DNA from: Macrostomum hystrix
Lineage: Eukaryota; Animalia; Platyhelminthes
NCBI GenBank assembly: GCA_950097015.1
Contig: CATNEN010000009.1
Location: 620,001-684,000, forward strand
Direction: 5' to 3'
DNA length: 64,000 nt
Shown here piece after piece: positions 15,484 to 61,120 of this stretch (position 1 is the stretch's first letter; the number at the start of each line of letters is the position of its first letter). The notes under the pieces were generated by a model. That model was given only the letters and a program-made list of their open reading frames with translations. It had not been told where the DNA came from and did no database searches. Position numbers and translations under genes: made by a program.

Positions 15484-16239
15484 ATGTGTGTTAGATACTT
15501 CTACGCGCTTTTCATCTTGGCTGTTTCTGCTTCACTAGCAACAGCCCAGAGCGGCCAGCAGTGCCCCACTGGATTCAGGCAGCTCAGCAACGGCTCCCTC
15601 TGCATTCACAGTGACTTCACGCGCACGCTGAGTGACATTGTCTCGGAGCTGCAGTGCTCCTTCGAGTGCACCAAGGAGCCGCGCTGCCAGGCCTTCACAA
15701 CCCAGGATGGACCGTGCCAGCTGTTCGTGTTCGACAAGTGCAGCAAGTCGGTGAGGAGCTGCAGCTGCTCAAGGAGAGGCCGAGTGTTCGTGAAGCGTCA
15801 GCCGGGACTCGAGCCTGGAGCGCTGTGTCCTTCTGGCTACGGTGACGAGCTGTGCGGAGTGAAGTACCGGCTGGTAAACGACTTCGCCGTCTGGCAAACT
15901 CAAAGACAGCGGTGCGAGTCGGAGCCGGGCCTGGTCATCATGGCAGATGTGATGAACATGACGGAGATGACTCACATTGATCAGATCTACGACAAGTACA
16001 ACCCGGGTTCCTTCTATTTGGGTGGCTTCCAACCGGCTGGCAGCTCTGAGAATGCGGGCGGCTGGCAGTGGATCAGCTGCAACATCAGCATGGTTGCTGG
16101 GTTATGGTCTACGGGTGAACCTAATGGAGGAGTTTCTGAAGACGTAACTGCGAGACACCAGACTATCCGCGGCGTCGTTGATATTTCGAAGTCGGATACT
16201 TTGCCTGCACTGTGCGAGTGTGTGTCTCCTTTTAACTAG
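15484..16239 (+). CDS. Secreted PAN/Apple + C-type lectin domain protein, copy 1 (intronless, 251 aa)
   Basis: Signal peptide; PAN-type CSFECTKEPRCQAF...CQL; CTLD with W..QRQRCESE, YLGG, GGWQW, W..GEPN and LCEC. Confidence 0.85.
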   Translation: MCVRYFYALFILAVSASLATAQSGQQCPTGFRQLSNGSLCIHSDFTRTLSDIVSELQCSFECTKEPRCQAFTTQDGPCQLFVFDKCSKSVRSCSCSRRGRVFVKRQPGLEPGALCPSGYGDELCGVKYRLVNDFAVWQTQRQRCESEPGLVIMADVMNMTEMTHIDQIYDKYNPGSFYLGGFQPAGSSENAGGWQWISCNISMVAGLWSTGEPNGGVSEDVTARHQTIRGVVDISKSDTLPALCECVSPFN

Positions 16240-16298
16240 CTGTGAAAGTGCGGTCCATTTCTAATACGTTCGGAAAACATCCTACAAAAAACCTATAG

Positions 16299-17351
16299 AT
16301 ATAGCATTTTGCAGGCTAGTAGAGAAAACAAGCAAGCAATTAAATAATCGATGACAAAGTCAGTGGAATTTTTTACACTCTATGGTCAAAGCCATGTGCA
16401 TTCCTGCAACCAAATAAATAATGTGAGCACGCAATTCATAAGAGTCATCAGTTCTTGTGTTTCTTCAGCTCGAAATGGACGCAATCGACATCGAGGAAGA
16501 TGACATTTTTAAGGAGGATGGAGACAGCTTTGTCACAGCGGAGGACGCAGTTCAGGCGGCGGCAGCACGTGGTCCGTACTCCAAGATAAGCAACGAAAAA
16601 TATGAACTGATAGTCAGTGCGCTTGAGCGAGGGGACAGTGCTGTGCAGATTTCGAGGTTTTTTAATGTAAAGGTACCAACTGTGTATACTATCCAACGGC
16701 GCTACGAGCTGACGGGACGTCGTGATCGACTTAAGTCATGCAGCTGCCGCCGTACTCACCATTTTTGAATCCGACTGAGAGTGCGCACTCCTGTCTGAAG
16801 GCGACAATAAAACCTCAGTTGTCTTTGCCCCAAGTTCAGCTCGAACTTGACAATCCCTCACCACAGACAAAACTATGCGAGTGGCGAATTCTTGTTCTTC
16901 AGAGAATCACAGAGGAAGCAACTTCTGAAATCACACCGGTCAAATGTGGAGGATGGTTTCGGAATGCACCCCGCTTCATCCCTAGATGTGTCGCGGGAGA
17001 AGACATCGTTTGATTTCTGCCATATATCGGACAGCTTCACTGAAGGAAATCTTTTTCGAGTTTCATTTTGTACTTTTCCCTGGGTTTTGCGTACTAGTTT
17101 TTCGTATGTTTCGTCATATTAAATAGTCACTTTTTGTACCACACCATTTAGCTTCTTAAATATACAGCATCACAGTTAGCTGTCGAATGTTTGCTAAGCA
17201 TTGAGAATTGATGAATTGCGTGCTCACATTATTTATTTGGTTGCAGGAATGCACATGGCTTTGACCATAGAGTGTAAAAAATTCCACTGACTTTGTCATT
17301 GATTATTTAATTGCTTGCTTGTTTTCTCTACTAGCCTGCAAAATGCTATAT
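16299..17351 (+). mobile_element. IS630-Tc1-mariner DNA transposon, internally deleted non-autonomous copy
   Basis: 141-bp terminal inverted repeats (16299-16439 / 17211-17351, one mismatch seen) with TA at both ends. An N-terminal HTH ORF (16457-16768, KISNEKYELIVSALERGDSAVQISRFFNVKVPTVYTIQRRYELTG) is fused out of frame to the transposase C-terminus LPPYSPFLNPTE. The central DDE core is missing. Confidence 0.9.
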
Positions 17352-17698
17352 TAAAACTATATGAACAGATTTCTGTACCCTTTTCTCTTCAATTATCTAT
17401 TTTTGCATTCAAAATAAAAACTTTCACCACTCAAGATCAAGGACTAGTTAATAAATTAAGTCGATTGATTTACTGATTCGATTATGATTGATAATCCTTA
17501 ATAGATTGATGAGTCATGCTCATGACGAGAATGGCATAGAGCCTTATGCTTTCTGACTGAGGCAAGGCGCACAATTATTCAATCTGTCGATAGGCAAATA
17601 GAAATTCAAAACTAGAATAGGCCAATCAAACTGAGAAAGTAAAGGTACTGCTCAGAATCAAATATCGCAAAGGATGCGTTTCCGTTGATGTATGGCAA

Positions 17699-17908
17699 AG
17701 GATACATTTCTATGGATATATACCATGCAATGGATACATTTCTATGGATATATAGCATACAAGGGATACATTTCTATGGATATATAGCATACAAGGGATA
17801 CATTTCTATGGATATATAGCATACAAGGGATACATTTCTATGGATATATAGCATACAAGGGATACATTTCTATGGATATAGGATACAAGGGATACATTTC
17901 TATGGATG
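17699..17908. repeat. 32-bp minisatellite, ~6.5 copies
   Basis: gggatacatttctatggatatatagcatacaa repeats with period 32 (17761, 17793...). Confidence 0.93.
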
Positions 17909-18238
17909 CATAGTGAAACCGCGTGCTTTTAGAGCCACATGTTATGCTCGAGCTTCGCTTGCAGAAAACACATTTTTCGTCGTCAATTCAAGTCTCCCTT
18001 CCATTTGATAGGCTTTCACAATTTGGCATGAATTGGGCACAAGCACTTGCACTATTTTGGCTGCCTCCTTTCGTGACCAACCCTGCAGTCAATAGCGGAG
18101 ATCAGATGTCCTCTGTCAACAGTGAATATCGTTGGTGCCATGGGATTGAGCGGAAGGACACTCAAGAAGGAAAATAGCGACGTAAATAAACGAAGGAAGC
18201 AACGAGCGAGCGAACGGGAGGGAAGGGTCAAGGACCAC

Positions 18239-18843
18239 TACAGTATAACTTCAGTTATATACTATAGCTATACTGTACTACAGTTATACTGTACTTCAGT
18301 TATACTGTACTTCAGTTATACTGTACTTCAGTTGTACTATACTTCAGTTATACTGTACTTCAGTTATACTGTACTTCAGTTATACTGTACTTCAGTTGTA
18401 CTATACTTCAGTTATACTGTACTTCAGTTATACTGTACTTCAGTTATACTATACTTCAGTTATACTGTACTTCAGTTTACTATACTTCAGTTATACTATA
18501 CTTCAGTTATACTGTACTTCAGTTATACTGTACTTCAGTTATACTGTACTTCAGTTATACTATACTTCAGTTATACTGTACTTCAGTTATACTATACTTC
18601 AGTTATACTGTACTTCAGTTATACTGTACTTCAGTTATACTGTACTTCAGTTATACTATACTTCAGTTATACTGTACTTCAGTTATACTATACTTCAGTT
18701 ATACTGTACTTCAGTTATACTATACTTCAGTTATACTATACTTCAGTTATACTGTACTTCAGTTATACTATACTTCAGTTATACTGTACTTCAGTTATAC
18801 TGTACTTCAGTTATACTATACTTCAGTTATACTGTACTATACT
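18239..18843. repeat. 16-bp minisatellite, ~37 copies
   Basis: Units are cttcagttatactgta / cttcagttatactata. The array generates the spurious ORFs 18122-18880 (+) and 18396-18998 (-). Confidence 0.95.
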
Positions 18844-19496
18844 CGCGTATCTCACGGCGATTGCGGGATGCATTCCATAGAAATGTGAAAGGAACTACTA
18901 AGTGTAGTGGTCGGCTAGTCCGTACCGGCCTCTTAACTTCTGATATTACGTTGCTGGAGTCGATTTTCGCATACTCAAATTTAAATACATTATTTTAAAT
19001 GAGCATATTCTAACATCTATTCTAACATGAGCATATTTATGGCATAATTATGTGTTCACAATCAACAAAGCTGCGCCAAGAAAGCTATTGTTTTGAGGAT
19101 TGTTGCTTTGTTGTTTACTTCATCTCACTAGTGGTGCATGAAGCAGACGTTGACTATTGGTGCAGACATTTCAATTCATGTGGACCAATGATGCATTTGA
19201 TTATTCGACTTTTACTCCTTCTCTGCACCGTGGCACCACTTTTTGCCGATTAATGGATTTTATCTAGTTTTAACCTAGGGCAGTAGCTGATAAAGCTTTT
19301 TGTATTTGAATTCTGTTTCATTTCTATTTTTACTGCATTCTTTGTCTGATTATTGAATTCGGCATTGTATGAATATTTATGATAGAACTACAGTTCTTGA
19401 TTATTGAATTTTGTCAAAAAAAAATTTGTTTCGCTAAGTGTTGCTTGAAGCTAGAGATGATCCACAGCTGGTTGTAGCCGGTGATGCCTTTGACGG

Positions 19497-21587
19497 CTAG
19501 TAAATATTCAACTTTCGGAGGACCAGGTACAGAAACATCAGACCAAAGTGTCTGAACCAGCTTGATAAGTCCTTTAGGCTGAGAGCATTGTTGGTGAGCA
19601 TCAAATTCATGAACGCACTCGTGCCGTTGTTAGGCTGCGGCCAGATTTTGAGCAAGAAGCACATCAGCTGGTAGATGTCCACTTGACGTATGCCTTCCAC
19701 ATCACCTTTGATCAGAACGTTTTTCTTAAAGCTCGGCCCCACGGCGAACATTGGTACGCGCATGTCGCTGTAGTGGTTGTTGAAGCCGTGGTGACCCATG
19801 GCGAGCGGCTTGGTGTCCCTACTGGTTAGCACCAGGTAGCCTTGGTTGGGAAGCACGATCACTTCCGGAGTTCTGCGGTTTTTGGCGTAGTGGAATTGGT
19901 CTGGCATTGAATTCGTATCGTATGTGCGAAACGTATGGTTGTGAATCTCCTGCTGCTTGACCAGGTATTCCAGCAGCTCCTTCTTCTTCCCTTTTTTGGC
20001 GTTCATGGTCAGCAGAGGCCCGCTGTCCAGCACGCGGTCCACAAGCTCGTCCATGTCGCTGTGCAAGCGGATCACTTTTTCGTCATCCTTGCCCATCACG
20101 CCTGTGTCAGGGTGGAAAATGTAGAACTGATATTATTGTCATTCTAGTCATGGTTCTCAAGCATTTTAATAAAAGCTCATCAAGCGCTTCGCCTCTGCGT
20201 TTCAGCCACCATTTTTGCTCTTCATTTTGGTTTCGAAAAGCACTGATAGTGTCGGTGGGATACGGCAGTGCAGAAACGAAAACACGCCTGCTCATAGCGC
20301 AGCTTGGACAGGACAGACGCACGCAGGCCGCATCTTTTGCTGTGCTCTTCCACTTGGACGGTACAAAATGCCTTCGCTTGTTAAAGGCACTGCAATTCAC
20401 GACTTTTTTCTCATTGCGATCTAAGCCAGGTCAAATAGGACGAGCCTCTGTGGCAGCGCTCCCGCACTTGACCTATTGGTAAGAACAGATAAGCGGCCAT
20501 CGCACAGCCAATTGCAACCTGCGACAGCGGAGCCCTTGTAGCCCCTCCGGCTAGCTGTGTGGAAACAAGCAAGAGACAAAAAATAGAATAAAACAAGCAA
20601 AAATTTCTTGCCTAGAGTGGTTCAAAGTTATCTAACTGAAGCCAGAAACCTTTCATTCGTAAACAAAATTGATGGGATGAGCTTTGTTTTTTTCCTTTTA
20701 GTAGATTGAATAAAATGCAAAGTGAAAAACACTAGTTCATTTAGAAACCAAAAGAAATCCACTTAAGGTAGGGGTTAGATCTCTTGTTTTCCGCGTAATT
20801 TAAACTTTAAAAAGAGCTTTGATTGTCTGTATTCGAGCTTTTCAGACTTTAAGACTCTTTTTTTAATTGTAACCCAAATACTTTACGGCCCCTACTCACC
20901 GTGGTCCGACACGATCAAGATGTTCACCTTATCCAAGAAGCTCTTCACCTTCAGCCCGTCAAACAAGAAGCGAATCGTATCGTCAACCTTCTTGAGAGCC
21001 TGTCGCACCTCCTTGGACTTTGGACCGTATCTGTGACCTGCTTTGTCTGGCTCATGAAAGTACATGGTGGTCATTTGAACTCCTCTCTCTGTGATCCATT
21101 CCAGCACAGTTTTCACACGTTGCTCAAATGGGACGGTCTCATTGTATTCAAACCAGAAGTCCTGGCGCAGGCCTCCAAGCTCGACTTCACTTCCAGGCCA
21201 GAAGTAGGTGGCTGACTTGAGGCCGTGCTTCTTGGCAGTGATCCAGATTGGGAGGGAGGCGTTCCACCAGCGCTCTTCCCGGGTTCCCTTGTTGAAGGTG
21301 GCGTTGAACACCGGGTCGTACATGTTGTTGCTTAGGATTCCGTGGCTTTCCTGGTAGAGTCCAGTAGCGATGGTCCAGTGGTTCGGGAAGGTCTTGGTGG
21401 CGAAGGCTGGCAGCATGTGCGAGACGTGCACGCCCTTTGGAATAAGACTTCGTAAAAACTCCGTCTCATCCGGGTACCAGTCGATATAGTCGTAGCGAAA
21501 GCCATCACAAGAGATCAGGAGTAACGAGTGGTTACCGGCATCAGCGGCGCAGAGCATAGCCAAGATGACAAGGTGCAGCAGGAGCAT
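19497..21587 (-). CDS. ENPP: Ectonucleotide pyrophosphatase/phosphodiesterase, ENPP4/5/6-like; exons 21587-20900 and 20101-19497; 430 aa
   Basis: Signal peptide; DGFRYDY; catalytic TKTFPNHWTIATG; YFHEPDKAGH; SDHG split by a phase-1 intron (G|gtgagt..acacag|GC); GHHGFNN; hydrophobic C-terminal tail. Confidence 0.92.
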
Positions 21588-22317: not shown

Positions 22318-25300
22318 ATTGATTCAATGGTTTAACATGGATTCGCCAAAGAGGTTTATGCAGAACACTGTTATTGATTCAATGGTTTAACATGGATTCG
22401 CCAAAGAGGTTTATGCAGAACACTGTTATTGATTCAATGGTTTAACATGGATTCGCCAAAGAGGTTTATGCAGAACACTGTTATTGATTCAATGGTTTAA
22501 CATGGATTCGCCAAAGAGGTTTATGCAGAACACTGTTATTGATTCAATGGTTTAACATGGATTCGCCAAAGAGGTTTATGCAGAACACTGTTATTGATTC
22601 AATGGTTTAACATGGATTCGCCAAAGAGGTTTATGCAGAACACTGTTATTGATTCAATTGTTTAACATGGATTCGCCAAAGAGGTTTATGCAGAACACTG
22701 TTATTGATTCAATGGTTTAACATGGATTCGCCAAAGAGGTTTATGCAGAACACTGTTATTGATTCAATGGTTTAACATGGATTCGCCAAAGAGGTTTATG
22801 CAGAACACTGTTATTGATTCAATGGTTTAACATGGATTCGCCAAAGAGGTTTATGCAGAACACTGTTATTGATTCAATGGTTTAACATGGATTCGCCAAA
22901 GAGGTTTATGCAGAACACTGTTATTGATTCAATGGTTTAACATGGATTCGCCAAAGAGGTTTATGCAGAACACTGTTATTGATTCAATGGTTTAACATGG
23001 ATTCGCCAAAGAGGTTTATGCAGAACACTGTTATTGATTCAATGGTTTAACATGGATTCGCCAAAGAGGTTTATGCAGAACACTGTTATTGATTCAATGG
23101 TTTAACATGGATTCGCCAAAGAGGTTTATGCAGAACACTGTTATTGATTCAATTGTTTAACATGGATTCGCCAAAGAGGTTTATGCAGAACACTGTTATT
23201 GATTCAATGGTTTAACATGGATTCGCCAAAGAGGTTTATGCAGAACACTGTTATTGATTCAATGGTTTAACATGGATTCGCCAAAGAGGTTTATGCAGAA
23301 CACTGTTATTGATTCAATGGTTTAACATGGATTCGCCAAAGAGGTTTATGCAGAACACTGTTATTGATTCAATGGTTTAACATGGATTCGCCAAAGAGGT
23401 TTATGCAGAACACTGTTATTGATTCAATGGTTTAACATGGATTCGCCAAAGAGGTTTATGCAGAACACTGTTATTGATTCAATGGTTTAACATGGATTCG
23501 CCAAAGAGGTTTATGCAGAACACTGTTATTGATTCAATGGTTTAACATGGATTCGCCAAAGAGGTTTATGCAGAACACTGTTATTGATTCAATGGTTTAA
23601 CATGGATTCGCCAAAGAGGTTTATGCAGAACACTGTTATTGATTCAATGGTTTAACATGGATTCGCCAAAGAGGTTTATGCAGAACACTGTTATTGATTC
23701 AATGGTTTAACATGGATTCGCCAAAGAGGTTTATGCAGAACACTGTTATTGATTCAATGGTTTAACATGGATTCGCCAAAGAGGTTTATGCAGAACACTG
23801 TTATTGATTCAATGGTTTAACATGGATTCGCCAAAGAGGTTTATGCAGAACACTGTTATTGATTCAATGGTTTAACATGGATTCGCCAAAGAGGTTTATG
23901 CAGAACACTGTTATTGATTCAACGGTTTAACATGGATTCGCCAAAGAGGTTTATGCAGAACACTGTTATTGATTCAATGGTTTAACATGGATTCGCCAAA
24001 GAGGTTTATGCAGAACACTGTTATTGATTCAATGGTTTAACATGGATTCGCCAAAGAGGTTTATGCAGAACACTGTTATTGATTCAATGGTTTAACATGG
24101 ATTCGCCAAAGAGGTTTATGCAGAACACTGTTATTGATTCAATGGTTTAACATGGATTCGCCAAAGAGGTTTATGCAGAACACTGTTATTGATTCAATGG
24201 TTTAACATGGATTCGCCAAAGAGGTTTATGCAGAACACTGTTATTGATTCAATGGTTTAACATGGATTCGCCAAAGAGGTTTATGCAGAACACTGTTATT
24301 GATTCAATGGTTTAACATGGATTCGCCAAAGAGGTTTATGCAGAACACTGTTATTGATTCAATGGTTTAACATGGATTCGCCAAAGAGGTTTATGCAGAA
24401 CACTGTTATTGATTCAATGGTTTAACATGGATTCGCCAAAGAGGTTTATGCAGAACACTGTTATTGATTCAATGGTTTAACATGGATTCGCCAAAGAGGT
24501 TTATGCAGAACACTGTTATTGATTCAATGGTTTAACATGGATTCGCCAAAGAGGTTTATGCAGAACACTGTTATTGATTCAATGGTTTAACATGGATTCG
24601 CCAAAGAGGTTTATGCAGAACACTGTTATTGATTCAATGGTTTAACATGGATTCGCCAAAGAGGTTTATGCAGAACACTGTTATTGATTCAATGGTTTAA
24701 CATGGATTCGCCAAAGAGGTTTATGCAGAACACTGTTATTGATTCAATGGTTTAACATGGATTCGCCAAAGAGGTTTATGCAGAACACTGTTATTGATTC
24801 AATGGTTTAACATGGATTCGCCAAAGAGGTTTATGCAGAACACTGTTATTGATTCAATGGTTTAACATGGATTCGCCAAAGAGGTTTATGCAGAACACTG
24901 TTATTGATTCAATGGTTTAACATGGATTCGCCAAAGAGGTTTATGCAGAACACTGTTATTGATTCAATGGTTTAACATGGATTCGCCAAAGAGGTTTATG
25001 CAGAACACTGTTATTGATTCAATGGTTTAACATGGATTCGCCAAAGAGGTTTATGCAGAACACTGTTATTGATTCAATGGTTTAACATGGATTCGCCAAA
25101 GAGGTTTATGCAGAACACTGTTATTGATTCAATGGTTTAACATGGATTCGCCAAAGAGGTTTATGCAGAACACTGTTATTGATTCAATGGTTTAACATGG
25201 ATTCGCCAAAGAGGTTTATGCAGAACACTGTTATTGATTCAATGGTTTAACATGGATTCGCCAAAGAGGTTTATGCAGAACACTGTTATTGATTCAATGG

Positions 25301-26052
25301 TTTAACATGGATTCGCCAAAGAGGTTTATGCAGAACACTGTTATTGATTCAATGGTTTAACATGGATTCGCCAAAGAGGTTTATGCAGAACACTGTTATT
25401 GATTCAATGGTTTAACATGGATTCGCCAAAGAGGTTTATGCAGAACACTGTTATTGATTCAATGGTTTAACATGGATTCGCCAAAGAGGTTTATGCAGAA
25501 CACTGTTATTGATTCAATGGTTTAACATGGATTCGCCAAAGAGGTTTATGCAGAACACTGTTATTGATTCAATGGTTTAACATGGATTCGCCAAAGAGGT
25601 TTATGCAGAACACTGTTATTGATTCAATGGTTTAACATGGATTCGCCAAAGAGGTTTATGCAGAACACTGTTATTGATTCAATGGTTAACATGGATTCGC
25701 CAAGAGGTTTATGCAGAACACTGTTATTGATTCAATGGTTAACATGGATTCGCCAAAGAGGTTTATGCAGAACACTGTTATTGATTCAATGGTTTAACAT
25801 GGATTCGCCAAGAGGTTTATGCAGAACACTGTTATTGATTCAATGGTTTAACATGGATTCGCCAAAGAGGTTTATGCAGAACACTGTTATTGATCAATGG
25901 TTTAACATGGATTCGCCCAAAGAGGTTTATGCAGAACACTGTTATTGATTCAATGGTTTAACATGGATTCGCCAAAGAGGTTTATGCAGAACACTGTTAT
26001 TGATTCAACGGTTTAACATGGATTCGCCAAAGAGGTTTATGCAGAACACTGT
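22318..26052. repeat. 55-bp satellite, ~68 nearly identical copies
   Basis: gattcaatggtttaacatggattcgccaaagaggtttatgcagaacactgttatt recurs with period 55 (22321, 22376...). Confidence 0.98.
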
Positions 26053-27050
26053 CACCACTGACTGCCACCACTGACGACTGGCTGCTTCGTGACTGTATCT
26101 TCGTGAGAAATTTATTTTTTGTCTATGGTCGGAATCAAGTGGTCTAAACCTATATGTCTATCAAGCAGATGGGATGCCCCCCGAAAATAAGCATCGCTAT
26201 TTCTCGATGAACATTAAACGCTGCCTCGGACATTCTAACCACAGAATGTGAATGAAACTGCGTTTATTATATATTTTATATATATATTATATAAAATATA
26301 TATTATCCAATATATATTATATTTACTTAGATTCAAAGATTAGAGATCTGAATCGATCCCTGGGCTAGCAGTAGTCTAAATAGCGATTTCTGTGGAAATA
26401 TCATTTCGCAAGTATATCCGAACCATTATCGAATACGAAGAAAATAGGTGGTGATTGTTATAACTTCAATCAACTCAAATATCCTTATAGTTAAACGAGT
26501 CCTGCCTTTGACAGGAGTCACAAGTGCAAGCAAGCTAAAATTGAAAATCACCCACCTACTAGTAAGCTAAATTTCAGCTGTTACGGGCTTACACCTGGCG
26601 ACATAAATGCAGGCGCAAACAATAAAAAAGTCAGCTTCTAAAAGACATCCTAAAGTGCATATCCTTCCAATCATAAGGCACCTACGTTAATGGGTTAGGA
26701 TAGGTTAAAACACTAAGTGAAGGCACCATGAAAGTAAGTAACTCCTTGAAAGAACATAGAAAATGACTTTGACAGGTCGCAAAGGCTCAAAACGCATTAG
26801 CTGGCGCTTTGACCGTAAAAGTCCTCCAAAACAAGTCAGCTTGCTGGGCATCTGGTCCCTCCATTGTCAAGGACGGATCCGAGAGGTAGGAAAGATGGAT
26901 TTAAAGCTTAACTGGACGAGCCAGAAAGCGAAAGCAGAGAGACAGAAGACGAGACAGATGGCTGCCTGTGCAATTATTAGTGCGTGTTGTTTCGGCTCCG
27001 GATTTTGCCTTGTTGGGCATTGAAAAGGAAGCCTTAGAGGCACGTCTACG

Positions 27051-27418
27051 AGCTCTTGTTACACTAATCTCGTGTAATCTGCTCGTAGAAGGTCTGGTGT
27101 CAGTCTTCGGGCTCTTGTTACACTAATCTCGTGTAATATGCTCGTAGAAAGCCTGGTGTCAGTCTTCGCAGGCTCTTGTTACACTAATCTCGTGTAATCT
27201 GCTCGTAGAAAGCCTGGTGTCAGTCTTCGGGCTCTTGTTACACTAATCTCGTGTAATCTGCTCGTAGAAAGTCTGGTGTCAGTCTTCGGGCTCTTGTTAC
27301 ACTAATCTCGTGTAATATGCTCGTAGAAAGCCTGGTGTCAGTCTTCGCAGGCTCTTGTTACACTAATCTCGTGTAATCTGCTCGTAGAAAGCCTGGTGTC
27401 AGTCTTCGCAGGCTCTTG
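27051..27418. repeat. 59/61-bp minisatellite, ~6 copies, upstream of lectin copy 2
   Basis: gctcttgttacactaatctcgtgtaatctgctcgtagaaagcctggtgtcagtcttcg(ca)g; starts at 27052, 27111, 27172... Confidence 0.93.
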
Positions 27419-27609
27419 CCAGAAATTTTAGCTCACGAAGACGTAAAATTGACTGATCATCGAAGGGCTAAACTACATGAAACAATTTTTTACACTGGGA
27501 TTCCACATCAAGCCGTTCACCTTACGCTCCCTACACAAAACGTTGCTTAGAACAGAAACTAGAAGCGATTCGATGAGCTCAGCATCAACAAGTTTCGGAC
27601 AGTGAAGTC

Positions 27610-28345
27610 ATGCAGCGGCGACAACTTTTGCTTGTTGTTCTGCTGACACTCCTGACCGCGCCGTTTTCCTCAGCTCAACTGCATCTGTTTGACGCGATCG
27701 ACTGTCGGATGTGCATTGACCGAAACTTTGCGATGGCCATCCAGACAGTCAAATCAGTGGTTTCCTGGGCAGCTCTCTGCGGCCAGAACCGGCGCTGCCA
27801 GGCCTTCACAACTCAGGACAGTCCATGCGTGCTGTTTGTGTTCGACAAGTGCAGCAAGTCGGTGTGGAAATGCAGCTGCTCAAAGAGAGGCCGAGTGTTC
27901 GTGAAGCGCCAATCGGGACTCGAGCCTGGACCATTGTGTCCGTCTGGCTTCGGTGACGAGCTTTGCGGAGTGAAGTACAGAATTCTGCGCGGCACTGGCA
28001 GCTGGTCAGCCAGCAGGCGGAGATGCGAGTCCGAGCCTGGTCTTGTTCTCATGTCCGATGTGACAAGCACTGCTGAGATGGCGCATATTCAGGCTCTGTA
28101 CACTAGCAGCGCGAGTCAGGCAATGTGGCTTGGAGGCTACCAGTTGCCAGGCAGTCCGGAGCCGTTAGGCGGCTGGGTCTGGGCGAGCTGTAGTCAGCCC
28201 TGGTCTGTGGCGAGACACTGAGCCAGGGAGCTCAAATGAGAATGCGACCGTCCTGTATAAGATGTATCCTGGCATGTGTGACATTCTGGCCTCCTATCCA
28301 GCTACTAATGACGTAATGTGCGAGTGTGTGTCGCCGCTTGAATGA
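27610..28345 (+). pseudogene. PAN + C-type lectin copy 2, frameshifted in the CTLD (pseudogene or assembly indel)
   Basis: The ORF stops at 28221. Shifting frame at ~28201 restores GLWRDTEPGSSNENATVLYKMYPGMCDILASYPATNDVMCECVSPLE*, collinear with the paralogs. A few codons before GLW are missing. Confidence 0.8.
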
Positions 28346-29432
28346 TTGAAAGAAGGTTATCCGATCAGAAAATCGGATCAGATCGCGAGCCAAATCAGTT
28401 TTTAGTCTCTTTGTCAGGCAATCGACTATGTTATAAGATGGAAATTAAATAAAATTGCCACTATGTCGAAGTGGTCTAGAAGCAAAAAAAGATTCGCCTG
28501 TCTTGAGGATTTTGCTACGCTTACTTACTTATTACTGACCTGATCAGAAGTGAAAATTGTTATTCCTTCAACCGACTTACCCGTTATTTAAAGATTTCAA
28601 TTTTTCTGGCCAAAATTTATCTTGCCAAAATGTGCAGTTAGAGTTTGTAAAGTGAAGCCAGTTTACAAAACAGCAAAGATGCCCGGATGGCTCCTTTGAT
28701 GAAAACTTTAGGCAGAAATCTTCACAAGATAACTAAACAAACTGCGCAGATTACAATGCACCAATTTTCTATTCTCAAAACTCCATAAGGAGAAAGTGCA
28801 GCTGGTCTAGCATTTTCTCTCTCGAGATCTTGAGTGTGCTTAAAAGCAAAAGGCATCAGGTCATGTGTTTTCATGTCAGTCGGTTCACGTGTGAAACAAG
28901 AAAATGTTCTCACTGTGAGAACTAAAAGCAAAGCATGATTGGCTGTTTATAACAAGCAACTTAAAGCAGAATAAATCGAAATGGACAAACTGATTTAGTA
29001 AAAGAGCAGAAGCTTTTTAAGTATAACCAATTTCGCATCTTATAATCAAGAGCTAGGTCTAGGTCGTTTGTAAATTTATTTCTAAGATTTGCAGTGACAT
29101 CAAGGATACATTTGACAGTGCTGCACGTTAATGAAGTCTTCTTCTCAGCAAGCACATTGTTGGGGATAAAAATGAATGCACCTGATGCCTCAGCAGCCCG
29201 ATTTCATTCCAACTTATGGTTTTACGCAAGAATTATTCTTCAAGCAGGCTCGGCCCATTCAGCTCACGGTTGCTATGATAAGTGAAACACTTGAAGAAAG
29301 CTGCAGGCAAACAATTAGCCAAATCAAGCCAAATATTTCAATCTGCTTCTCAAGGCCTATATATCTTAAGCTTCCTGTGAAGCACGGTTTCTTCCAAGGC
29401 ATCACATTCTGGGATCTCAAGGTTTCTAAAAA

Positions 29433-30197
29433 ATGTTTAGCCTCTTCGCATCCGTAACGCGGTTCTTGTGGATCGTCGCATGCATTTTTCACCAACGTGT
29501 GGATGCTGACTGGTCCCAGCAGTATCATTGCGTCACTGGCAGTCTCTGCATCGACAGCCACTTTATTGAAACACAGAGCGCCCCGCACTTAAGCGTCTGC
29601 GCAACGCTGTGCAGCCTCAACCAGCACTGCCAGGCTTTTACGATTGAATACGGTCCGTGCCAGCTGTTCGTTTTCGACAAGTGCAGCAAGTCGGTGAGCA
29701 GCTGCAGCTGCTCAAAGAGAGGCCGAGTGTTCGTGAAGCGCCAATCGGGACTCGAGCCTGGCGCATTGTGTCCATCTGGCTACGGTGAAGAGTTGTGCGG
29801 AGTGAAGTACAAAATTCTGCGCGACACTGGCAGCTGGTCAGCCAGCAAAGAAAAGTGTGAGTCGGAGCCTGGTCTGGTGCTCATGACAGACGTGGCAGAC
29901 GTGGTCGAAATGGACCATGTGGAGATGCTGTACAGACGCAGCAGTGCAGGCAAGGCTCTCTGGCTTGGAGGCTACCAGTTGCCAGGCAGTCCGGAGCCTG
30001 CAGGCGGCTGGATGTGGGCCAGCTGCGGTGGCGACGTTAGCGCCAGTCTGTGGGCCACTGGCGAGCCGACAAATTCCTACAATGGAGGCGAGAACGTGAC
30101 AGCGAGATGGACTGTGAAACCTAGGATTACTGATTTTTTGGCCTTCTCAACAGCAGCAAACGACGTCCTGTGCGAATGCGTGTCTCCATTCACTTAG
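29433..30197 (+). CDS. Secreted PAN + C-type lectin protein, copy 3 (254 aa)
   Basis: Signal peptide, CATLCSLNQHCQAF, the shared core FVFDKCSKSV..GVKY, and a CTLD with GEPT and CECVSPFT. Confidence 0.85.
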   Translation: MFSLFASVTRFLWIVACIFHQRVDADWSQQYHCVTGSLCIDSHFIETQSAPHLSVCATLCSLNQHCQAFTIEYGPCQLFVFDKCSKSVSSCSCSKRGRVFVKRQSGLEPGALCPSGYGEELCGVKYKILRDTGSWSASKEKCESEPGLVLMTDVADVVEMDHVEMLYRRSSAGKALWLGGYQLPGSPEPAGGWMWASCGGDVSASLWATGEPTNSYNGGENVTARWTVKPRITDFLAFSTAANDVLCECVSPFT

Positions 30198-31710
30198 CTG
30201 ATAATGAAGTAAAAACTTGCGCAATCACTTCAAAATCGTCCTTTACTTTCGTACTGTTGTCTCCGTTGCCTGGCTCGATTATGGAGTAAAGATTTTATAT
30301 GCCTGGCAAATAACTTTTTAAATATTTGCCTTCTAGAATGATGCTGAAATTCTGAAGATTTTAGAGTTGCGAGCTGACTTTTGCCATCGAAATTAATTAA
30401 AAGTTCATACTACTGTCAGTAGAATGTTGAGCACAATGCATCTAAATCAAAAGCAGAAGTGAGTATCATGATGCTTTATTAAAAAGCCTTCATTCTTCAT
30501 TCAGTACTTAACTCAAACATTCGGGAATCAAGTGTCTTATTCGTTGAAAGCAGGCAACTCTAAGTTGGGCTGTGAAAATGTACGCGGAAATCATTTTTCA
30601 CACAGGCTGCTTGCAAAAAATCGTATGCAGACGAAATCTTGAGCCTTCACGTTTAGTTAGCATTGACTAGTCCCGGTGGAGCCATGAAAGCGTCGTTAAT
30701 TAGAGGCCGTTAGACACAAGCTGGCCGCTGGACGGTGGCCCAATCTAATTTTTCCCCTAGCACTGTCTAGCAGAGCAGACCAGCCTCTTCCCTACTCTGC
30801 CACCTGCTCCTCTTCGCATTGTTTTGCCCGGTCGGGTGCAGCCAAGGTCACTTTGACTCATGGCGCCATTGATATGACAGCAGCCGGTGGCAGCCCCGAT
30901 CAGCCCATCGTCCGATCCCAGTCTCCAGAGCCGCTAATAATTCATGAGCTGCCTTTTTATTGCGTCAATACGAGAATGGCAGACAAATATTTCTCGCTTG
31001 ACAACAACGGAATGCTAACTCTCGTAGATTGGAAATTAGACGTAGGACCATTGTGGCGTGTGCGATGCGTTTATTAGCACAATATCCAGACATTCCCCAC
31101 GGTCCAGGCAGAAATGCTAAAGAAATAGGGGTTTCGGAAGTAAGTCACATGAGGCATGGGCATTAAGTCTCAGCAGCAAACGTGACTGGTCCAAAAATGC
31201 ATGCCCGCTAAAAGGACACTCTTCAAGCTTTGGAATTGGGAGTCAAATTTATCATATTTAATGTTGTTTCAGATTAGGCCGCTAAAATAAAAACCTGACT
31301 TCGAGCGTTTAATGAGGAGACTATTTCATTATTCTCATTATTCTAAAAGCATAAACGAACAAGTTTGAATTAAGAATCGTTTTTTATCGCCGTGTCGTGC
31401 CTTGCTTCTTAATTTGCCGTAAATAAAAAACAACTACAATAAATACTTAGGCACAATATTCTCAATGCAGAAAATGTACTTCGTATTAATTTGACCTACA
31501 GAACTATTTCCAGCAATAAAAATTAATCTGTCCAAAAACAGCTAAAACTAAAAACTCCTATTAATCTAATTGGTTATAATTTTTTGAACCAACCAAAGAG
31601 CTTGCCCGTGTGGGTAGTGCGTCTGCATATAGAACTTTGCATATAGAACTATTCACAAATATCAGCATTCGACTCTTGAGCAGTTCGGTTTTTCCAGAAC
31701 AATCAGCGCA

Positions 31711-32457
31711 ATGCATCCTGTCGACCTCTTATTCCTGGTCATCTCAGCTTCACTAGCAACAGCCCAGAGCGGTCAGCAGTGCCTCACTGGATTCTGGCAG
31801 CTCAGCAACGGCTCCCTCTGCATTCGCAGTGACTTCACGCGCACGTTCAGTGACATTGGCTCGGAGCTGCAGTGCTCCTTCGAGTGCACCAAGGAGCCGC
31901 GCTGCCAGGCCTTCACAACCCAGGATGGACCGTGCCAGCTGTTCGTGTTCGACAAGTGCAGCAAGTCGGTGAGGAACTGCAACTGCTCCAAAAGAGGCCG
32001 AGTGTTCGTGAAGCGCCAATCGGGACTCGAGCCTGGCGCACTGTGTCCATCTGGCTACGGTGACGAGCTGTGCGGAGTGAAGTATCAGTTCATGAATGAC
32101 TTGAAAACGTGGGCGAATCAGAGGCTGAGATGCGAGTCCCAGCCGGGCCTTGTGATCATGGCCGATGTGACGGACGATGCTGAGCTGAGCCATGTGAATG
32201 CCATGTACGTCGCTCACAACCCGGGAATACCTATGTACCTGGGCGGCTACCGGACATTTACCGGCAGCGCGCAGACGGATGGCTGGTTTTGGATCGGCTG
32301 CAATGGCACTGTCGGAAACTTTGTATGGGCTCCAGGTGAACCAAATAGTTTTGAAGAGAAGGCCACTGCTCGTTACACGAGCATCGAGAAAATTGTTGAC
32401 ATCACTGACACCGGGTTGTATGGCGTAATTTGCGAGTGTCTTTCACCCTTTGCCTGA
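31711..32457 (+). CDS. Secreted PAN + C-type lectin protein, copy 4 (248 aa)
   Basis: Same architecture; GEPN; AATAAA at ~32529. Confidence 0.87.
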   Translation: MHPVDLLFLVISASLATAQSGQQCLTGFWQLSNGSLCIRSDFTRTFSDIGSELQCSFECTKEPRCQAFTTQDGPCQLFVFDKCSKSVRNCNCSKRGRVFVKRQSGLEPGALCPSGYGDELCGVKYQFMNDLKTWANQRLRCESQPGLVIMADVTDDAELSHVNAMYVAHNPGIPMYLGGYRTFTGSAQTDGWFWIGCNGTVGNFVWAPGEPNSFEEKATARYTSIEKIVDITDTGLYGVICECLSPFA

Positions 32458-32930
32458 TTCACCGAGGCGGCCGAACTTCAAGAAGACAAATGAAGAAAAC
32501 TTGCGCGAAAGGCAAAAATTAGTCGCTTAATAAAATATATGTACTTTACTCAAGGTCTTTTTTGGAGTGTCGGCCACTTTCTGCTTCAGACCGATCGATA
32601 CTATGCTATCTTCTACGCACACTAGATTGCCCAACCGTGCGGAATGAACGATACTCATATCTATATTAGATTCAGATAGATTCTAGTAGTTCTAGTAGTT
32701 CTAGTAGTATCTGAATCTAGTAGTATCCATCTATCGCTTTGGTTGCTGGATTTCCACTTTGTAAACTTGTAATATACAGTTATAAGCGATCACTACAAAA
32801 ATAGTTTTTTCGTTTTTGTAAATATATACTAGCTCTGAATAAGGCCCAGTTTTGGCCAAAACTTTGGTCCATCGCTTAAAACAGAAATCTGCCGCTCGAA
32901 CTGTGTGCGTGGCGCGCCTGTAGGTGACAT

Positions 32931-34423
32931 GAATCTATCTATCTATCTGAATCTATCTGAATCTATCTGAATCTATCTGAATCTATCTGAATCTATCTGA
33001 ATCTATCTGAATCTATCTGAATCTATCTGAATCTATCTGAATCTATCTGAATCTATCTGAATCTATCTGAATCTATCTGAATCTATATGAATCTATCTGA
33101 ATCTATCTGAATCTATCTGAATCTATCTGAATCTATCTGAATCTATCTGAATCTATCTGAATCTATCTGAATCTATCTGAATCTATCTGAATCTATCTGA
33201 ATCTATCTGAATCTATCTGAATCTATCTGAATCTATCTGAATCTATATGAATCTATCTGAATCTATCTGAATCTATCTGAATCTATCTGAATCTATCTGA
33301 ATCTATCTGAATCTATCTGAATCTATCTGAATCTATCTGAATCTATCTGAATCTATCTGAATCTATCTGAATCTATCTGAATCTATCTGAATCTATCTGA
33401 ATCTATCTGAATCTATCTGAACCTATCTGAATCTATCTGAATCTAACTGAATCTATCTGAATCTATCTGAATCTATCTGAATCTATCTGAATCTATCTGA
33501 ATCTATCTGAATCTATCTGAATCTATCTGAATCTATCTGAATCTATCTGAATCTATCTGAATCTATCTGAATCTATCTGAATCTATCTGAATCTATCTGA
33601 ATCTATCTGAATCTATCTGAATCTATATGAATCTATCTGAATCTATCTGAACCTATCTGAATCTATCTGAATCTAACTGAATCTATCTGAATCTATCTGA
33701 ATCTATCTGAATCTATCTGAATCTATCTGAATCTATCTGAATCTATCTGAATCTATCTGAATCTATCTGAATCTATCTGAATCTATCTGAATCTATCTGA
33801 ATCTATCTGAATCTATCTGAATCTATCTGAATCTATCTGAATCTATCTGAATCTATCTGAATCTATCTGAATCTATCTGAATCTATCTGAATCTATCTGA
33901 ACCTATCTGAATCTATCTGAATCTATCTGAATCTATCTGAATCTATCTGAATATATCTGAATCTATCTGAATCTATCTGAATCTATCTGAATCTATCTGA
34001 ATCTATCTGAATCTATCTGAATCTATCTGAATCTATCTGAATCTATCTGAATCTATCTGAATATATCTGAATCTATCTGAATCTATCTGAATCTATCTGA
34101 ATCTATCTGAATCTATCTGAATCTATCTGAATCTATCTGAATCTATCTGAATCTATCTGAATCTATCTGAATCTATCTGAATCTATCTGAATCTATCTGA
34201 ATCTATCTGAATATATCTGAATCTATCTGAATATATCTGAATCTATCTGAATCTATCTGAATCTATCTGAATCTATCTGAATCTATCTGAATATATCTGA
34301 ATCTATCTGAATCTATCTGAATCTATCTGAATCTATCTGAATCTATCTGAATCTATCTGAATCTATCTGAATCTATCTGAATCTATCTGAATCTATCTGA
34401 ATCTATCTGAATCTATCTGAATC
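32931..34423. repeat. 10-bp satellite (atctatctga)n, ~149 copies
   Basis: Perfect 10-nt period with sparse variants (atctatatga, acctatctga, atctaactga, atatatctga). Confidence 0.98.
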
Positions 34424-35400: not shown

Positions 35401-35804
35401 AGATTTCGTTGGAGACACTTCATCCATTAGTAAAGAACTTTCGTAGTCAGAAGAAGAAGACAGCAGAAGACAAAAGCCTTTTTTATGGTTCAAGAAAATA
35501 CAAAGGTAGCAGGAAAGCTAGCAAAGTACAAGAATTGCGAGACTGCAGCTGCCCTAGAAATATCATAACATGGCAAAAATATGCGCGCCAAGCTCGCTTT
35601 CCGCATTTTTTCTACCTTTTCTTCCTCTCATTTATGCACTGCCAATATGATTCACTTCGATCCATCCGATTGAAGTAAATTTTACCCTTACTATTGTTAC
35701 TATTGTCATGTGTGTATAATGTTTAACTTGATCGAATAACTATTCGCTGAATATAAAAAATCAGCAACTTTGAAGCGTGCGCAAAAAATATATAATAAGA
35801 AGGA

Positions 35805-36092
35805 GTGAGTCCACATGCGCCATCTCGGCGGAGTCAGTCACCTCTCAGCCATGATCGCAAGCCCCGCGTCCGGCTCACAATTCTGATTGTGCACAGACCA
35901 CATGAGAGTCTTCCGAAATGTTTCTGTACTTTACTCCGCACAGGTCGTCACTCTAGCTAGGCGGGCACAGCGCACCTGGCTTGAGTCCCGGCTGGCCTCT
36001 CCTTGAGCAGCCGCAGTCTCTCACTAACTTGCCGCACTTGTCGAACACGAAGAGCTGGCAGTGCCCGGCGTTCATGTTGAAGCCCTGGCAGC
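35805..36092 (-). pseudogene. Decayed PAN + C-type lectin copy (remnant)
   Basis: SCQGFNMNAGHCQLFVFDKCGKLVRDCGCSRRG[deletion]QPGLKPGALCPPS*, then DDLCGVKYR and a frameshifted CEPDAGLAIMA..VTDSAEMAHV. Confidence 0.8.
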
Positions 36093-36588
36093 TAGTAAGG
36101 TCTGTATACGAGTACAGACCCTGAATCTCATCGTTAGGGATTTAACACTTTTAAAGTGCATGGAGGTTGGCCCTCGAGGACGGACATTGCATAGTAAGCC
36201 ACCAAGGCTAGTTTTTTCGGCTGCGCCCCAAAATGAACGTAGCCTAGCTCACACGCCGAATCCATATCTCAGGAATCTTGCGCGACAGACAAACGTGTTA
36301 GACCATTGTTGGACTTTTTGCTATATTTTTTCATAGAATAGAGGTGGAACTTCTGAGAAGCAAGCCGAAGCACGCTCAAACTCATCGTTTTTCGCGCTTG
36401 CCGAGGCATTGACAGTAGGCGGAGGGAGCCGAAAATAATTTTGTGGGGGTGGGGCCAGAAACGAGACACAACACATCTGAAGCATTTCCCAACCATGATG
36501 GTACCCGTAAGTCTCAGAAAACCTCAGTAGAAAAATGTCAGGTGAATAACCGTCGCACTATCCTGTGGCGCAAGAGTGGCTCAATCAA

Positions 36589-37386
36589 TCAATCGAATGG
36601 GGAGACGCACTCGCAGATGGTGCCACCGAAGGGGGTCAGCCAGAAAGCATCGTACAAGCCGACGGCGCCATAGTACTGCTTCACTGCGTTCTCGCCAAAG
36701 TTACCAGCGTTATTTGGCTCTCCAGAAAGCCAGAGACCGATGTCCACAGGTAGGCCACAGGAGACCCACTGCCAGCCGCCAGCAGGCTCAGGACTCCCTG
36801 CAGTCTGGAAGCCGCCAATCCAGACCTCTCTGTTTGCGCTCCCAGACAAACTTGCCAGGTGGCTGAGCTCAGCTGAGTTCGTCACGTCAGCCATGATGGT
36901 GAGGCCAGCCTCCGACTCGCACTTCTGCCTGCTCTGTTCCCATGCTCCGGTTCCGAAGTGAAGTAGGTACTTCACTCCGCACAGCTCGTTACCGTAGCCA
37001 GATGGACACAGTGCGCCAGGCTCGAGTCCCGATTGGCGCTTCACGAACACTCGGCCTCTTTTGGAGCAGTTGCAGTTCCTCACCGACTTGCTGCACTTGT
37101 CGAACACGAACAGCTGGCACGGTCCATCCTGGGTTGTGAAGGCCTGGCAGCGCGGCTCCTTGGTGCACTCGAAGGAGCACTGCAGCTCCGAGCCAATGTC
37201 ATTCAGCGTGCGCGTGAAGTCGCTGCGAATGCAGAGGGAGCCGTTGCTGAGCTGCCAGAATCCAGTGGGGCACTGCTGACCGCTCTCGGCTTTGAGTACA
37301 AGACTTAAAATTAAAACTAAAATCAAAAAACTTTTTAGGCATTTTTCTATCTGTGATGTAAGCTTGCTTGCCTGTAATGCTTGCAT
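36589..37386 (-). CDS. Secreted PAN + C-type lectin protein, copy 5 (265 aa), inverted relative to copies 1-4
   Basis: SGQQC..GVKY is 102/106 identical to copy 4. CTLD has GEPNN, LYD and ICECVSPFD. The leader differs from the paralogs, so the start codon is less certain. Confidence 0.82.
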   Translation of the reverse strand: MQALQASKLTSQIEKCLKSFLILVLILSLVLKAESGQQCPTGFWQLSNGSLCIRSDFTRTLNDIGSELQCSFECTKEPRCQAFTTQDGPCQLFVFDKCSKSVRNCNCSKRGRVFVKRQSGLEPGALCPSGYGNELCGVKYLLHFGTGAWEQSRQKCESEAGLTIMADVTNSAELSHLASLSGSANREVWIGGFQTAGSPEPAGGWQWVSCGLPVDIGLWLSGEPNNAGNFGENAVKQYYGAVGLYDAFWLTPFGGTICECVSPFD

Positions 37387-61100: not shown

Positions 61101-61120
61101 CAACGTTCAACATATGTCAT

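Follow-up and report, generated by a model that had tools for sequence, protein, structure and literature searches.

In the flatworm Macrostomum hystrix, a tandem array of small lectin genes carries front halves that are nearly identical in several copies, followed by lectin domains with little in common. We consider it probable that patchwise non-allelic gene conversion of the front half has been superimposed on old lineages of CTLDs (C-type-lectin-like domains), in a process reinforced by the constraint on a conserved core. Gene conversion of the front half, which the initial annotation of this DNA had proposed, is well supported by sequence comparison: synonymous divergence is non-uniform along the genes, the tracts end inside the coding sequence, the flanks are unrelated, and the trees of the two halves are incongruent. 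The CTLDs, which had been regarded as hypervariable and diversifying, appear instead to be old paralogous lineages with recognisable counterparts in Macrostomum lignano. Neither uniform dS, nor congruent trees nor mis-assembly, the three contrary outcomes named beforehand, was found.

Lectin gene copies and their predicted products

In the window (i.e., the whole 64-kb stretch of DNA analysed), tblastn revealed exactly six loci with PAN-like and C-type-lectin-like sequences, five single-exon genes (c1 to c5) and one remnant (Table 1), as had been read from the sequence initially. An ENPP exon neighbours the lectin genes. RNA-like contigs from runs X5-X7 are colinear with c4, with no mismatches and no joints, and the c4 coding sequence is therefore intronless. 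c1 is apparently transcribed, because loose ends of RNA-like contigs from run X7 correspond to its signal peptide and to where its CTLD begins. Note that no single contig covers an entire gene. No RNA contig was found on c2, and none on c3 except a 35-nt piece within the shared core.

Table 1. Lectin-family loci, their segments and the recent conversion tracts (positions within the window)
Feature	Position	Strand	State or remark
c1	15484-16239	+	Intact single ORF, 251 aa
c1 signal peptide	15484-15549
c1 N1	15550-15684
c1 core	15685-15867
c1 remaining CTLD	15868-16236
c2	27610-28345	+	Frameshifted, frame 1 to frame 2 near 28200
c2 core	27796-27978
c3	29433-30197	+	Intact single ORF, 254 aa; EPT in place of EPN
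c3 core	29628-29810
c4	31711-32457	+	Intact single ORF, 248 aa; transcribed
c4 signal peptide	31711-31767
c4 N1	31768-31902
c4 core	31903-32085
c4 remaining CTLD	32086-32454
c5	36589-37386	-	Intact single ORF, 265 aa; inverted orientation
c5 N1	37150-37284
c5 core	36967-37149
c5 remaining CTLD	36592-36966
Remnant	35797-36132	-	Decayed copy; core and first half of CTLD
c4-c5 recent tract	31766-32084	+	c4 nt 56-374; c5 counterpart 36967-37284
c1 recent tract common with c4 and c5	15550-15757	+	c4 nt ~58-265

c2 is probably a pseudogene. The five sugar-binding loop strings quoted in the initial annotation are all present, with the qualification that EPGSSNE of c2 is readable only after a 1-nt frameshift; a DNA contig of the independent run X1 (covering 28139-29732) gives the same reading, with no indel at this place, and has further indels at 28080 and 28330. 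When translated, the remnant (41-45% identity in tblastn) is interrupted by stops and frameshifts and has a 6-codon deletion. Its core differs from those of the other copies with pS of 0.32-0.47 and pN of 0.15-0.20, and it appears not to have been homogenised recently. Each copy has a signal peptide and none a membrane segment, which makes the presumed secretion plausible.

The CTLD double-loop alpha/beta fold is predicted to be present. An AlphaFold2 model of c5 built from a 25-sequence alignment reached pLDDT 91 and pTM 0.81 (a model from an 11-sequence alignment, with pLDDT 50, was discarded), and Foldseek matched it in the PDB to the CRDs of langerin, CD23 and DC-SIGN (E 3e-9, TM by target 0.8-0.85). 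Furthermore, the family profile matches solved CTLDs with E from 3e-31 to 6e-15. With Pfam Lectin_C, the window copies give no match or 16.5 bits, under the gathering cut-off of 22.6, and more distant family members score above it (25-45 bits). In an HMM alignment with CTLD2 of Endo180, C1 (alpha1) and C4 (beta5) are kept; the C2-C3 disulfide is absent, because there is no Cys at either of the aligned positions (the C of 'EDC' and the C after 'WND'). Of Ca2+ site 2, EPN and the downstream Glu are found in c1, c4 and c5, with EPT in c3 and EPG in c2. At the WND position, Asp is kept and V, T, Y or C takes the place of Asn (VVD, ITD, IVD, LYD, MCD); xND is retained in distant relatives. No copy has a complete calcium/sugar site, and canonical Ca2+-dependent sugar binding appears doubtful.

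The N-terminal module was not matched by the Pfam PAN models in the window copies at E 0.1. PAN_1 was matched by 8 of 25 family members, and its cut-off was passed by four of the ten tested; hhalign connected the Macrostomum-type N-modules to those of the PAN_1-matching relatives (probability 79%, E 1.6e-5, 39 columns). Residues 43-116 of the c5 model form a beta-beta-alpha-beta-beta-beta arrangement compatible with a PAN fold, and no PAN domain was returned by the structure searches of the PDB, AFDB clusters and the ESM Atlas, all of which were dominated by the CTLD.

Probable conversion tracts in front of old lectin lineages

The nucleotide sequences of c1, c4 and c5 are 93-100% identical starting at the end of the signal peptide; the identity of c4 and c5 continues until the GVKY codons and that of c1 only to c4 nt ~265. 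At the protein level, c4 and c5 differ at 4 of 106 residues between SGQQC and GVKY (96% identity), and c1 is 91% identical to both over this segment. The remaining CTLDs of these three copies are only 36-44% identical. Both the closeness and the low lectin-domain identity had been recognised initially; the idea of a near-constant N-module, however, holds for c1, c4 and c5 and not for c2 and c3. In the latter, divergence is large over the module's first 45 residues (pN 0.5-0.6) and only the 61-residue core (CQAF...CGVKY) is near-constant, with a mean identity of 90% in all five copies; the 183 nt encoding it are 85-98% identical across all five, c2 included. Outside the shared tracts, the flanks and the remaining lectin domains are unalignable or ~50% identical in sliding comparisons, and flanking DNA is 20-40% identical between copies, i.e., at the random level.

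The c4-c5 tract contains 6 differences in 319 nt, none of them in nt 150-351; from nt 375 onwards, nearly all codons differ, and the break is confined to the uninformative interval c4 nt 352-375. The tract common to c1 and c4/c5 has four c1-specific differences, none in nt 150-265, and a dS of 0.07; the identity of c1 and c4 also takes in the end of the signal peptide. In nt 266-339, c1 has 12 differences, whereas c4 and c5 have none. The runs of consecutive matching polymorphic sites comprise 68 (c4-c5) and 44 (c1-c4/c5) sites (global permutation p 2e-4), and a GENECONV-like permutation test gave global p <= 4e-4 for c4-c5, c1-c4, c1-c5 and c2-c3. The tracts are internal, with both ends within the coding sequence and otherwise unrelated DNA around them. 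The homogenised block is more than the 'PAN stalk' of the initial annotation: it also takes in the N-terminal CP..C..Y hairpin that belongs to the CTLD, and it breaks off midway through strand beta1 rather than at a domain border.

Synonymous divergence (estimated by NG86) follows the same partition, with dS of 0.02-0.07 in the shared tracts. In N1, dS is 0.07 among c1, c4 and c5; in the core it is 0.02-0.5 (0.024 for c4-c5); in the CTLD, pS is 0.56-0.83, i.e., saturated. GC3 is 0.84-0.87 in the converted N1 versus 0.63-0.67 in the CTLD, which is consistent with GC-biased conversion. pN is lower than pS in every pair compared. Positive selection in the CTLD cannot be claimed, because pS is saturated and the sequences are too few, and the divergence is distributed across helices and strands as well as loops.

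In the CTLD tree, c4 groups with M. lignano P0001/P0002 (support 100/99; the comparison with P0001-P0003 is at the protein level), and their EPNSF.EKATARY loops are nearly identical. AU tests on the CTLD rejected a clade of c1, c4 and c5 (p 1.8e-4) and a clade of the five window copies (p 8.6e-5). For c3, N1 and the CTLD are both nearest to a copy of M. lignano at L001 6196-6962. When the window was compared with the M. lignano loci L001 and L004 for synteny, nothing but the lectin genes matched. In the core tree, the five window copies form one clade apart from the M. lignano copies (75/80), and AU tests rejected the CTLD-lineage groupings (p 0.016 and 0.037, for groups named after seeing the data). 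With moderate core-tree support (75/80; AU p 0.016-0.037), homogenisation of the core in all five copies is less decisive than the c1/c4/c5 tracts. Core pS is 0.02-0.37 within the window versus 0.34-0.45 to the M. lignano copy, and core pN between the species is 0.06-0.12, indicating strong conservation. Protein constraint explains part of the core similarity, because the core is strongly conserved between species as well.

These data suggest the following course. The tandemly arrayed genes, a family common to M. lignano, would encode small secreted two-module proteins whose CTLD lineages diverged before the front halves grew alike. Non-allelic gene conversion would then overwrite the front half repeatedly, in patches starting and ending within the coding sequence. 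A very recent tract would have united c4 with c5 (N1 and core) and another recent one c1 with c4/c5 (N1 and the first third of the core), and older or recurrent events would keep the 183-nt core similar in the whole set of five, the probable pseudogene c2 among them. A loss of usable nucleotide homology at the GVKY codons may be what ends the tracts there. Constraint on the core protein would preserve enough identity for heteroduplex formation and conversion would homogenise the core further, closing a self-reinforcing loop. The conserved block may serve a function common to all paralogues (folding, oligomerisation or docking), with CTLD heads differing in ligand.

Weighing other explanations

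A constant prefix, a variable suffix and an abrupt break between them would superficially also fit a recent duplication of whole units, with subsequent very fast divergence of the CTLD by positive selection or focal hypermutation and an unchanged front half. Focal hypermutation has been proposed for conotoxins and some antimicrobial-peptide genes. Here, however, CTLD synonymous sites are saturated while the front half is nearly unchanged, the unalignable 5' and 3' flanks mean that the copies are not young duplicates, the CTLD lineages are represented in M. lignano too (that of c4 by P0001/P0002), and pN stays below pS in every pair; this explanation is largely refuted, and we regard it as hardly credible. 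An artefact of assembly by collapsed or chimeric repeats is the least probable explanation of all. De Bruijn contigs do break within the shared block, where summed depth is very high, but each front half is marked by SNPs of its own and continues into unique flanking DNA; in contigs of another study, the passage of c4 from the unique 5' end to N1 and that from the core to the unique CTLD are both free of mismatches, and the junctions of c1 and c5 recur in loose ends.

Single unequal crossovers, or recombination of the exon-shuffling type at an ancestral junction intron, could have produced chimeric genes as well, and we consider this unlikely. In its favour, a phase-2 intron of M. lignano P0006 interrupts the codon immediately before CGVKY, a position that lies inside the c4 nt 352-375 interval, and P0005 and P0006 show a similar contrast (99% identical N-modules, 80% identical CTLDs). 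But a crossover would bring its flank along, whereas the tracts end 5' inside the coding sequence with unrelated DNA upstream, and the c1 tract ends at nt ~265, away from the junction. An ancestral junction intron is not established, since introns are absent from the window copies as well as from L001 6196-6962 of M. lignano, and P0017 has its intron at another position; equating the break with an ancestral intron was down-weighted for this reason, L001 6196-6962 being the nearest M. lignano copy. Selection at the nucleotide level, for instance on an RNA element within the block or an antisense frame overlapping it, could keep the sequence identical with no exchange at all. Core pS is low even between species (0.34-0.45, against 0.6-0.7 in the CTLD), the TGC GGA GTG AAG TAC codons are identical across species, and a long antisense ORF covers the front half of c4 (31753-32217). 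Nevertheless, such an ORF is to be expected in GC3-rich coding DNA, the core groups window copies against M. lignano copies rather than lineage by lineage, the N1 identity is limited to c1, c4 and c5 with c2 and c3 far diverged, and the 12 differences in nt 266-339 are confined to c1 among the three. Selection of this kind is very improbable, and patchwise gene conversion is the explanation that we retain.

Relation to known families and implications

Small secreted proteins combining PAN/apple and C-type lectin modules are encoded by gene models 41/42 in the LG11L schistosome-resistance region of Biomphalaria glabrata (PMC13712769), and PAN-CTLD combinations occur in nematodes (PMC5297725). 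Like these lophotrochozoan and nematode proteins, the window copies have two modules, ~230-260 aa and a signal peptide, but they fall under both Pfam thresholds and lack the C2-C3 disulfide and the WND Asn. Feature matches in the ESM Atlas (0.96) were mostly to molluscan clusters with PAN_1 and Lectin_C, and both Pfam thresholds are exceeded by some of the more distant relatives that the profile search recovered. The window CTLDs share the fold of langerin, DC-SIGN, CD23 and mannose receptor CRD4 (TM 0.8-0.85), including the long-form N-terminal hairpin, and c1, c4 and c5 have EPN and the downstream Glu in common with mannose-type CRDs. Unlike the latter, they carry V, T or Y in place of the WND Asn, no C2-C3 disulfide, an extra Cys after W.W and a C-terminal CEC. 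Our literature search found neither a published report of region-limited conversion in PAN-CTLD genes nor a published description of this lectin family in flatworms.

Region-limited concerted evolution is known from NK-cell lectin-like receptors, MHC, globins and snail FREPs. In those families, as here, one part is homogenised by ectopic conversion and the other is lineage-specific, with incongruent trees and non-uniform dS; in the window genes, however, the patch is internal to a single exon, ends inside a CTLD beta-strand and involves a pseudogene. The family also resembles FREPs, VCBPs and CTLD expansions as a secreted multigene set with one conserved and one divergent module, but differs from them in that the variable module is anciently diverged rather than hypervariable and bears no sign of ongoing diversification or positive selection (pN below pS, pS saturated).

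The mechanism is a familiar one, and this is a clean but ordinary case of region-limited gene conversion. It offers a compact and well-resolved example of patchwise conversion inside single-exon genes, with sharp ends, tracts of differing age and a pseudogene as participant. A more far-reaching idea, to which we give a low probability, is that the homogenised block is maintained as an oligomerisation or docking platform for a large repertoire of old heads with different ligands, in immunity or mate/gamete recognition, with pseudogenes as donors; the depth spike over the core would hint at tens of copies genome-wide. In any case, a lectin family may look 'constant plus variable' without being a recognition system in rapid diversification; of the two parts, the variable one is old here and the constant one young. 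Should the family turn out to be large, with expression in a defined cell type, it would provide a tractable entry to the secreted lectins of flatworms, with Macrostomum as a laboratory model.

A clustered family of single-exon lectin-like genes

The region from 15.5 to 37.4 kb carries one gene type in five full-length copies (c1-c5) and a decayed remnant, a count made in the initial annotation and borne out by ORF listing and tblastn. Each full copy is one ORF that opens with a signal-peptide-like sequence and closes with the motif CEC.SPF at the C-terminus; in c2 this end can be reached only across a frameshift of 1 nt near 28200. The cluster is interspersed with unrelated genes and satellite arrays. 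The ENPP exon used as query best matches molluscan ENPP5-like proteins (45-50% identity), with no flatworm orthologue among the matches of this search, and for the neighbouring genes of the window neither an M. lignano orthologue nor synteny was found. Long spurious ORFs at 18122-18998 are due to the 16-bp array. Note also the strong local GC-skew excursions in the window (+0.50 at 54001-56000, -0.28 at 60001-62000).

Lectin-like gene copies, interrupting genes and satellite arrays in the window
Feature	Positions	Strand	Evidence or description
c1	15484-16239	+	ORF listing, tblastn
c2	27610-28345	+	ORF listing, tblastn
c3	29433-30197	+	ORF listing, tblastn
c4	31711-32457	+	ORF listing, tblastn
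c5	36589-37386	-	ORF listing, tblastn
Remnant	35797-36132	-	Stop codons, frameshifts, six-codon deletion
MatE transporter exon	13608-14462	-	E 5e-31; interrupts lectin cluster
ENPP-type phosphodiesterase, two exons	19497-21587	-	E 5e-71; interrupts lectin cluster
Satellite	17696-17907		32 bp x 7
Satellite	18269-18838		16 bp x 36
Satellite	22318-26052		55 bp x 68, 99% matches, 3.7 kb
Satellite	27044-27418		59 bp x 6
Satellite	32930-34423		10 bp x 150

By themselves, the window copies fall below Pfam thresholds. A family profile matched 1990 proteins, among them proteins of ~250 aa that share the two-module layout and lie above the PAN_1 and Lectin_C cut-offs, and it matches solved C-type-lectin-like domains (CTLDs) with E values of 3e-31 to 6e-15. 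In an AlphaFold2 model (25-sequence alignment; pLDDT 91, pTM 0.81), the C-terminal half superposes on the CRDs of langerin, CD23 and DC-SIGN (TM 0.8-0.85). For the front part (N-module), a PAN-like fold is supported but not proven: hhalign relates it to PAN_1-positive relatives (79%, E 1.6e-5, 39 columns) and its predicted order beta-beta-alpha-beta-beta-beta fits PAN; no PAN domain was among the matches of the structure searches. The matches by ESM-Atlas features are mostly molluscan PAN_1 + Lectin_C clusters (score 0.96). Gene models of this type have been noted, without functional study, in nematodes (PMC5297725) and in a resistance region of Biomphalaria (PMC13712769).

Contigs from a DNA run (X1) and from runs of a different study returned as RNA (X5-X7) were placed on 27400-32600. 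The X5-X7 contigs covered c4 alone; they are colinear with it, free of joints and at 0 mismatches, which shows that c4 is transcribed and that its coding sequence is intronless. Loose ends in X7 match the signal peptide and the start of the CTLD of c1, which thus appears to be transcribed as well. No RNA contigs were found for c2 and c3 in this placement. The c2 frameshift recurs in a DNA contig across the gene, other contigs have extra indels at 28080 and 28330, and c2 is probably a pseudogene; its core is homogenised to the same degree as that of the other copies. Summed X1 contig depth, which is not a copy number, reaches ~3475 over the core (31924-32097) versus 80-200 nearby, and the loose ends include sequence of at least three paralogues that are absent from the window (e.g., RSDCHCTKRG and VRDCSCSRRG variants). 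This is suggestive of a core common to many more copies and of a much larger family genome-wide.

Mosaic structure and probable gene conversion

The five genes were aligned together with 600-bp flanks and scanned with a sliding 60-nt window (positions counted from the ATG). The flanks show 20-40% identity, i.e., the random level. From ~+50, c1, c4 and c5 are 93-100% identical, for c4-c5 up to ~+350, while c1 drops to 86-91% against c4/c5 beyond ~+227. Across all five copies, identity is 85-98% from ~+190 to ~+350 and then falls sharply to ~50%. Site by site, the 319 positions of nt 56-374 contain 6 differences between c4 and c5 (none in nt 150-351), and nearly all codons differ from nt 375 on, the third base of the GVKY Tyr codon. 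The near-identity of c1 stops sooner, at ~nt 265, followed by 12 differences in nt 266-339, several of them common to c2 and c3. The family gene is a four-segment mosaic: a lineage-specific signal peptide; N1 (45 codons), where homogenisation is limited to c1, c4 and c5; a 61-codon core (CQAF...CGVKY) with near-identity throughout c1-c5; and the remaining CTLD, again lineage-specific. The near-constant N-module of the initial annotation thus holds for N1 and core of c1, c4 and c5, but in c2 and c3 only for the core.

Synonymous divergence, the uniformity of which would speak against the proposed conversion, is clearly non-uniform along the gene (Nei-Gojobori estimates per region). In N1, dS is 0.07 among c1, c4 and c5, and against c2 or c3 pS is 0.66-0.77 and pN ~0.6. 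In the core, dS is 0.024 for c4-c5, ~0.2 for c1 versus c4/c5 and 0.3-0.5 for c2 or c3 versus the others. In the remaining CTLD, pS is saturated in all pairs (0.56-0.83) and pN is 0.26-0.44. In a GENECONV-like test that shuffled the 413 polymorphic sites, runs of 68 (c4-c5) and 44 (c1-c4 and c1-c5) consecutive matches were significant (each global p <= 4e-4), as was a c2-c3 run of 25 matches within the CTLD (nt 527-563; global p <= 4e-4). Furthermore, GC3 is 0.84-0.87 in the converted N1 versus 0.63-0.67 in the CTLD, consistent with GC-biased conversion.

The closest public proteins are 'C-type lectin domain-containing proteins' of Macrostomum lignano (39-56% identity), and no identical protein is recorded; two short Logan contigs match as well. 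One M. lignano locus (NIVC01001023.1) holds two family members: the annotated P0006 and, 3 kb upstream of its gene, the unannotated, frameshifted and intronless MligB (6196-6962), which is closest to c3 in N1 and CTLD. Its GSPEP..GGW motif carries the frameshift and a small deletion, and MligB is either a pseudogene or affected by an assembly indel error. In the CTLD, c4 is 58% and 56% identical to the M. lignano proteins P0001 and P0002, respectively, versus 36-44% to its window neighbours; in the N-module it is 72-77% identical to these proteins versus 96% to c5 and 91% to c1.

Maximum-likelihood trees with AU tests, computed separately for CTLD and core, are incongruent, as expected under conversion. 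The CTLD tree unites c4, P0001 and P0002 (100/99). Monophyly is rejected there for c1+c4+c5 (p 1.8e-4), for all five copies of the window (p 8.6e-5) and for the M. lignano trio (p 0.0012). The tree of the 61-residue core joins c1-c5 in one clade (75/80) and places the M. lignano trio together; groupings of c4+P0001+P0002 (p 0.016) and of c2+c3+MligB (p 0.037) are rejected. Diagnostic core residues are FDK / SKRGRV / QSG in the window copies (c1 retains SRRGRV and QPG) and FDR / SRRGRL / QPG in M. lignano copies from two CTLD lineages. Tree conflict and residues together give the signature that is classical for concerted evolution, with the front half following the host genome or cluster and the CTLD an older paralogue lineage. 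As the N1 of c1, c4 and c5 groups with P0001/P0002 (85/95), a c4-type gene may have been the donor.

Block border and the lectin domain

The initial annotation had placed the homogenisation in a 'PAN stalk'. The front half is indeed homogenised, but the block does not end at a domain border. CPSGYG.ELCGVKY aligns to the 'CPxGW...CYxF' hairpin that starts long-form CTLDs, and strand 138-147 of the AlphaFold2 model crosses the break without interruption; the block therefore takes in the first 14 CTLD residues, and the break lies within a beta-strand.

The window copies retain EPN (as EPT in c3 and EPG in c2) together with the Glu and Asp that follow it. In contrast to a canonical CRD, the WND Asn is replaced by V, T, Y or C in all of them and the C2-C3 disulfide is absent; the sugar site is incomplete. 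CTLD divergence is not centred on loops (identity 29% in helix alpha2, 20% before beta5, 43% in the EPN loop), and no test favoured the hypervariable, diversifying lectin domain proposed before; nor is an immune recognition repertoire supported by anything tested here. Bacterial PEP-CTERM lectin-like proteins (P0009, P0012; Atlas matches) contain LGG.QP.GSPEPAGGW.W almost exactly as in the flatworm CTLDs (64% identity over the stretch).

Alternative explanations and strength of the case

Mis-assembly of the front halves is unlikely, because the front halves carry SNPs of their own and each sits between unique flanks; moreover, one contig links the unique 5' end of c4 with N1 and another the core with the unique c4 CTLD. 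A minor rival is recombination at an exon junction as the source of the front-half/CTLD break. In P0006, a phase-2 intron interrupts the codon right before CGVKY, within the uninformative stretch that must contain the end of the c4-c5 tract, and P0005 versus P0006, both from M. lignano, repeat the contrast of the window (N-module 99%, CTLD 80% identical). However, the intron of P0017 is at another place, MligB and all window copies are intronless, and the c1 tract ends elsewhere than the c4-c5 tract. A further small intron of the P0006 gene (10001-11240 of NIVC01001023.1) lies close to the signal peptide. P0013 (3072 aa), a read-through gene model from public data, contains three to four units of a more distant subfamily in tandem, with SVYKM in place of GVKY and, again, N-modules nearly identical among units.

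There is good support for conversion of the front half, which we consider quite likely. The conclusion would hold even for copies from M. lignano itself, in which case the lineages would predate the separation of the clusters rather than a species split. The evidence is decisive for the c1/c4/c5 tracts and moderate for five-way homogenisation of the core. The core is strongly constrained between species (pN 0.06-0.12 and pS just 0.34-0.45 versus MligB; within-window pS 0.02-0.37), and the five-way similarity therefore owes part to constraint. Region-limited conversion is a known kind of evolutionary pattern, of which these genes are a clean new case in an undescribed flatworm gene family.
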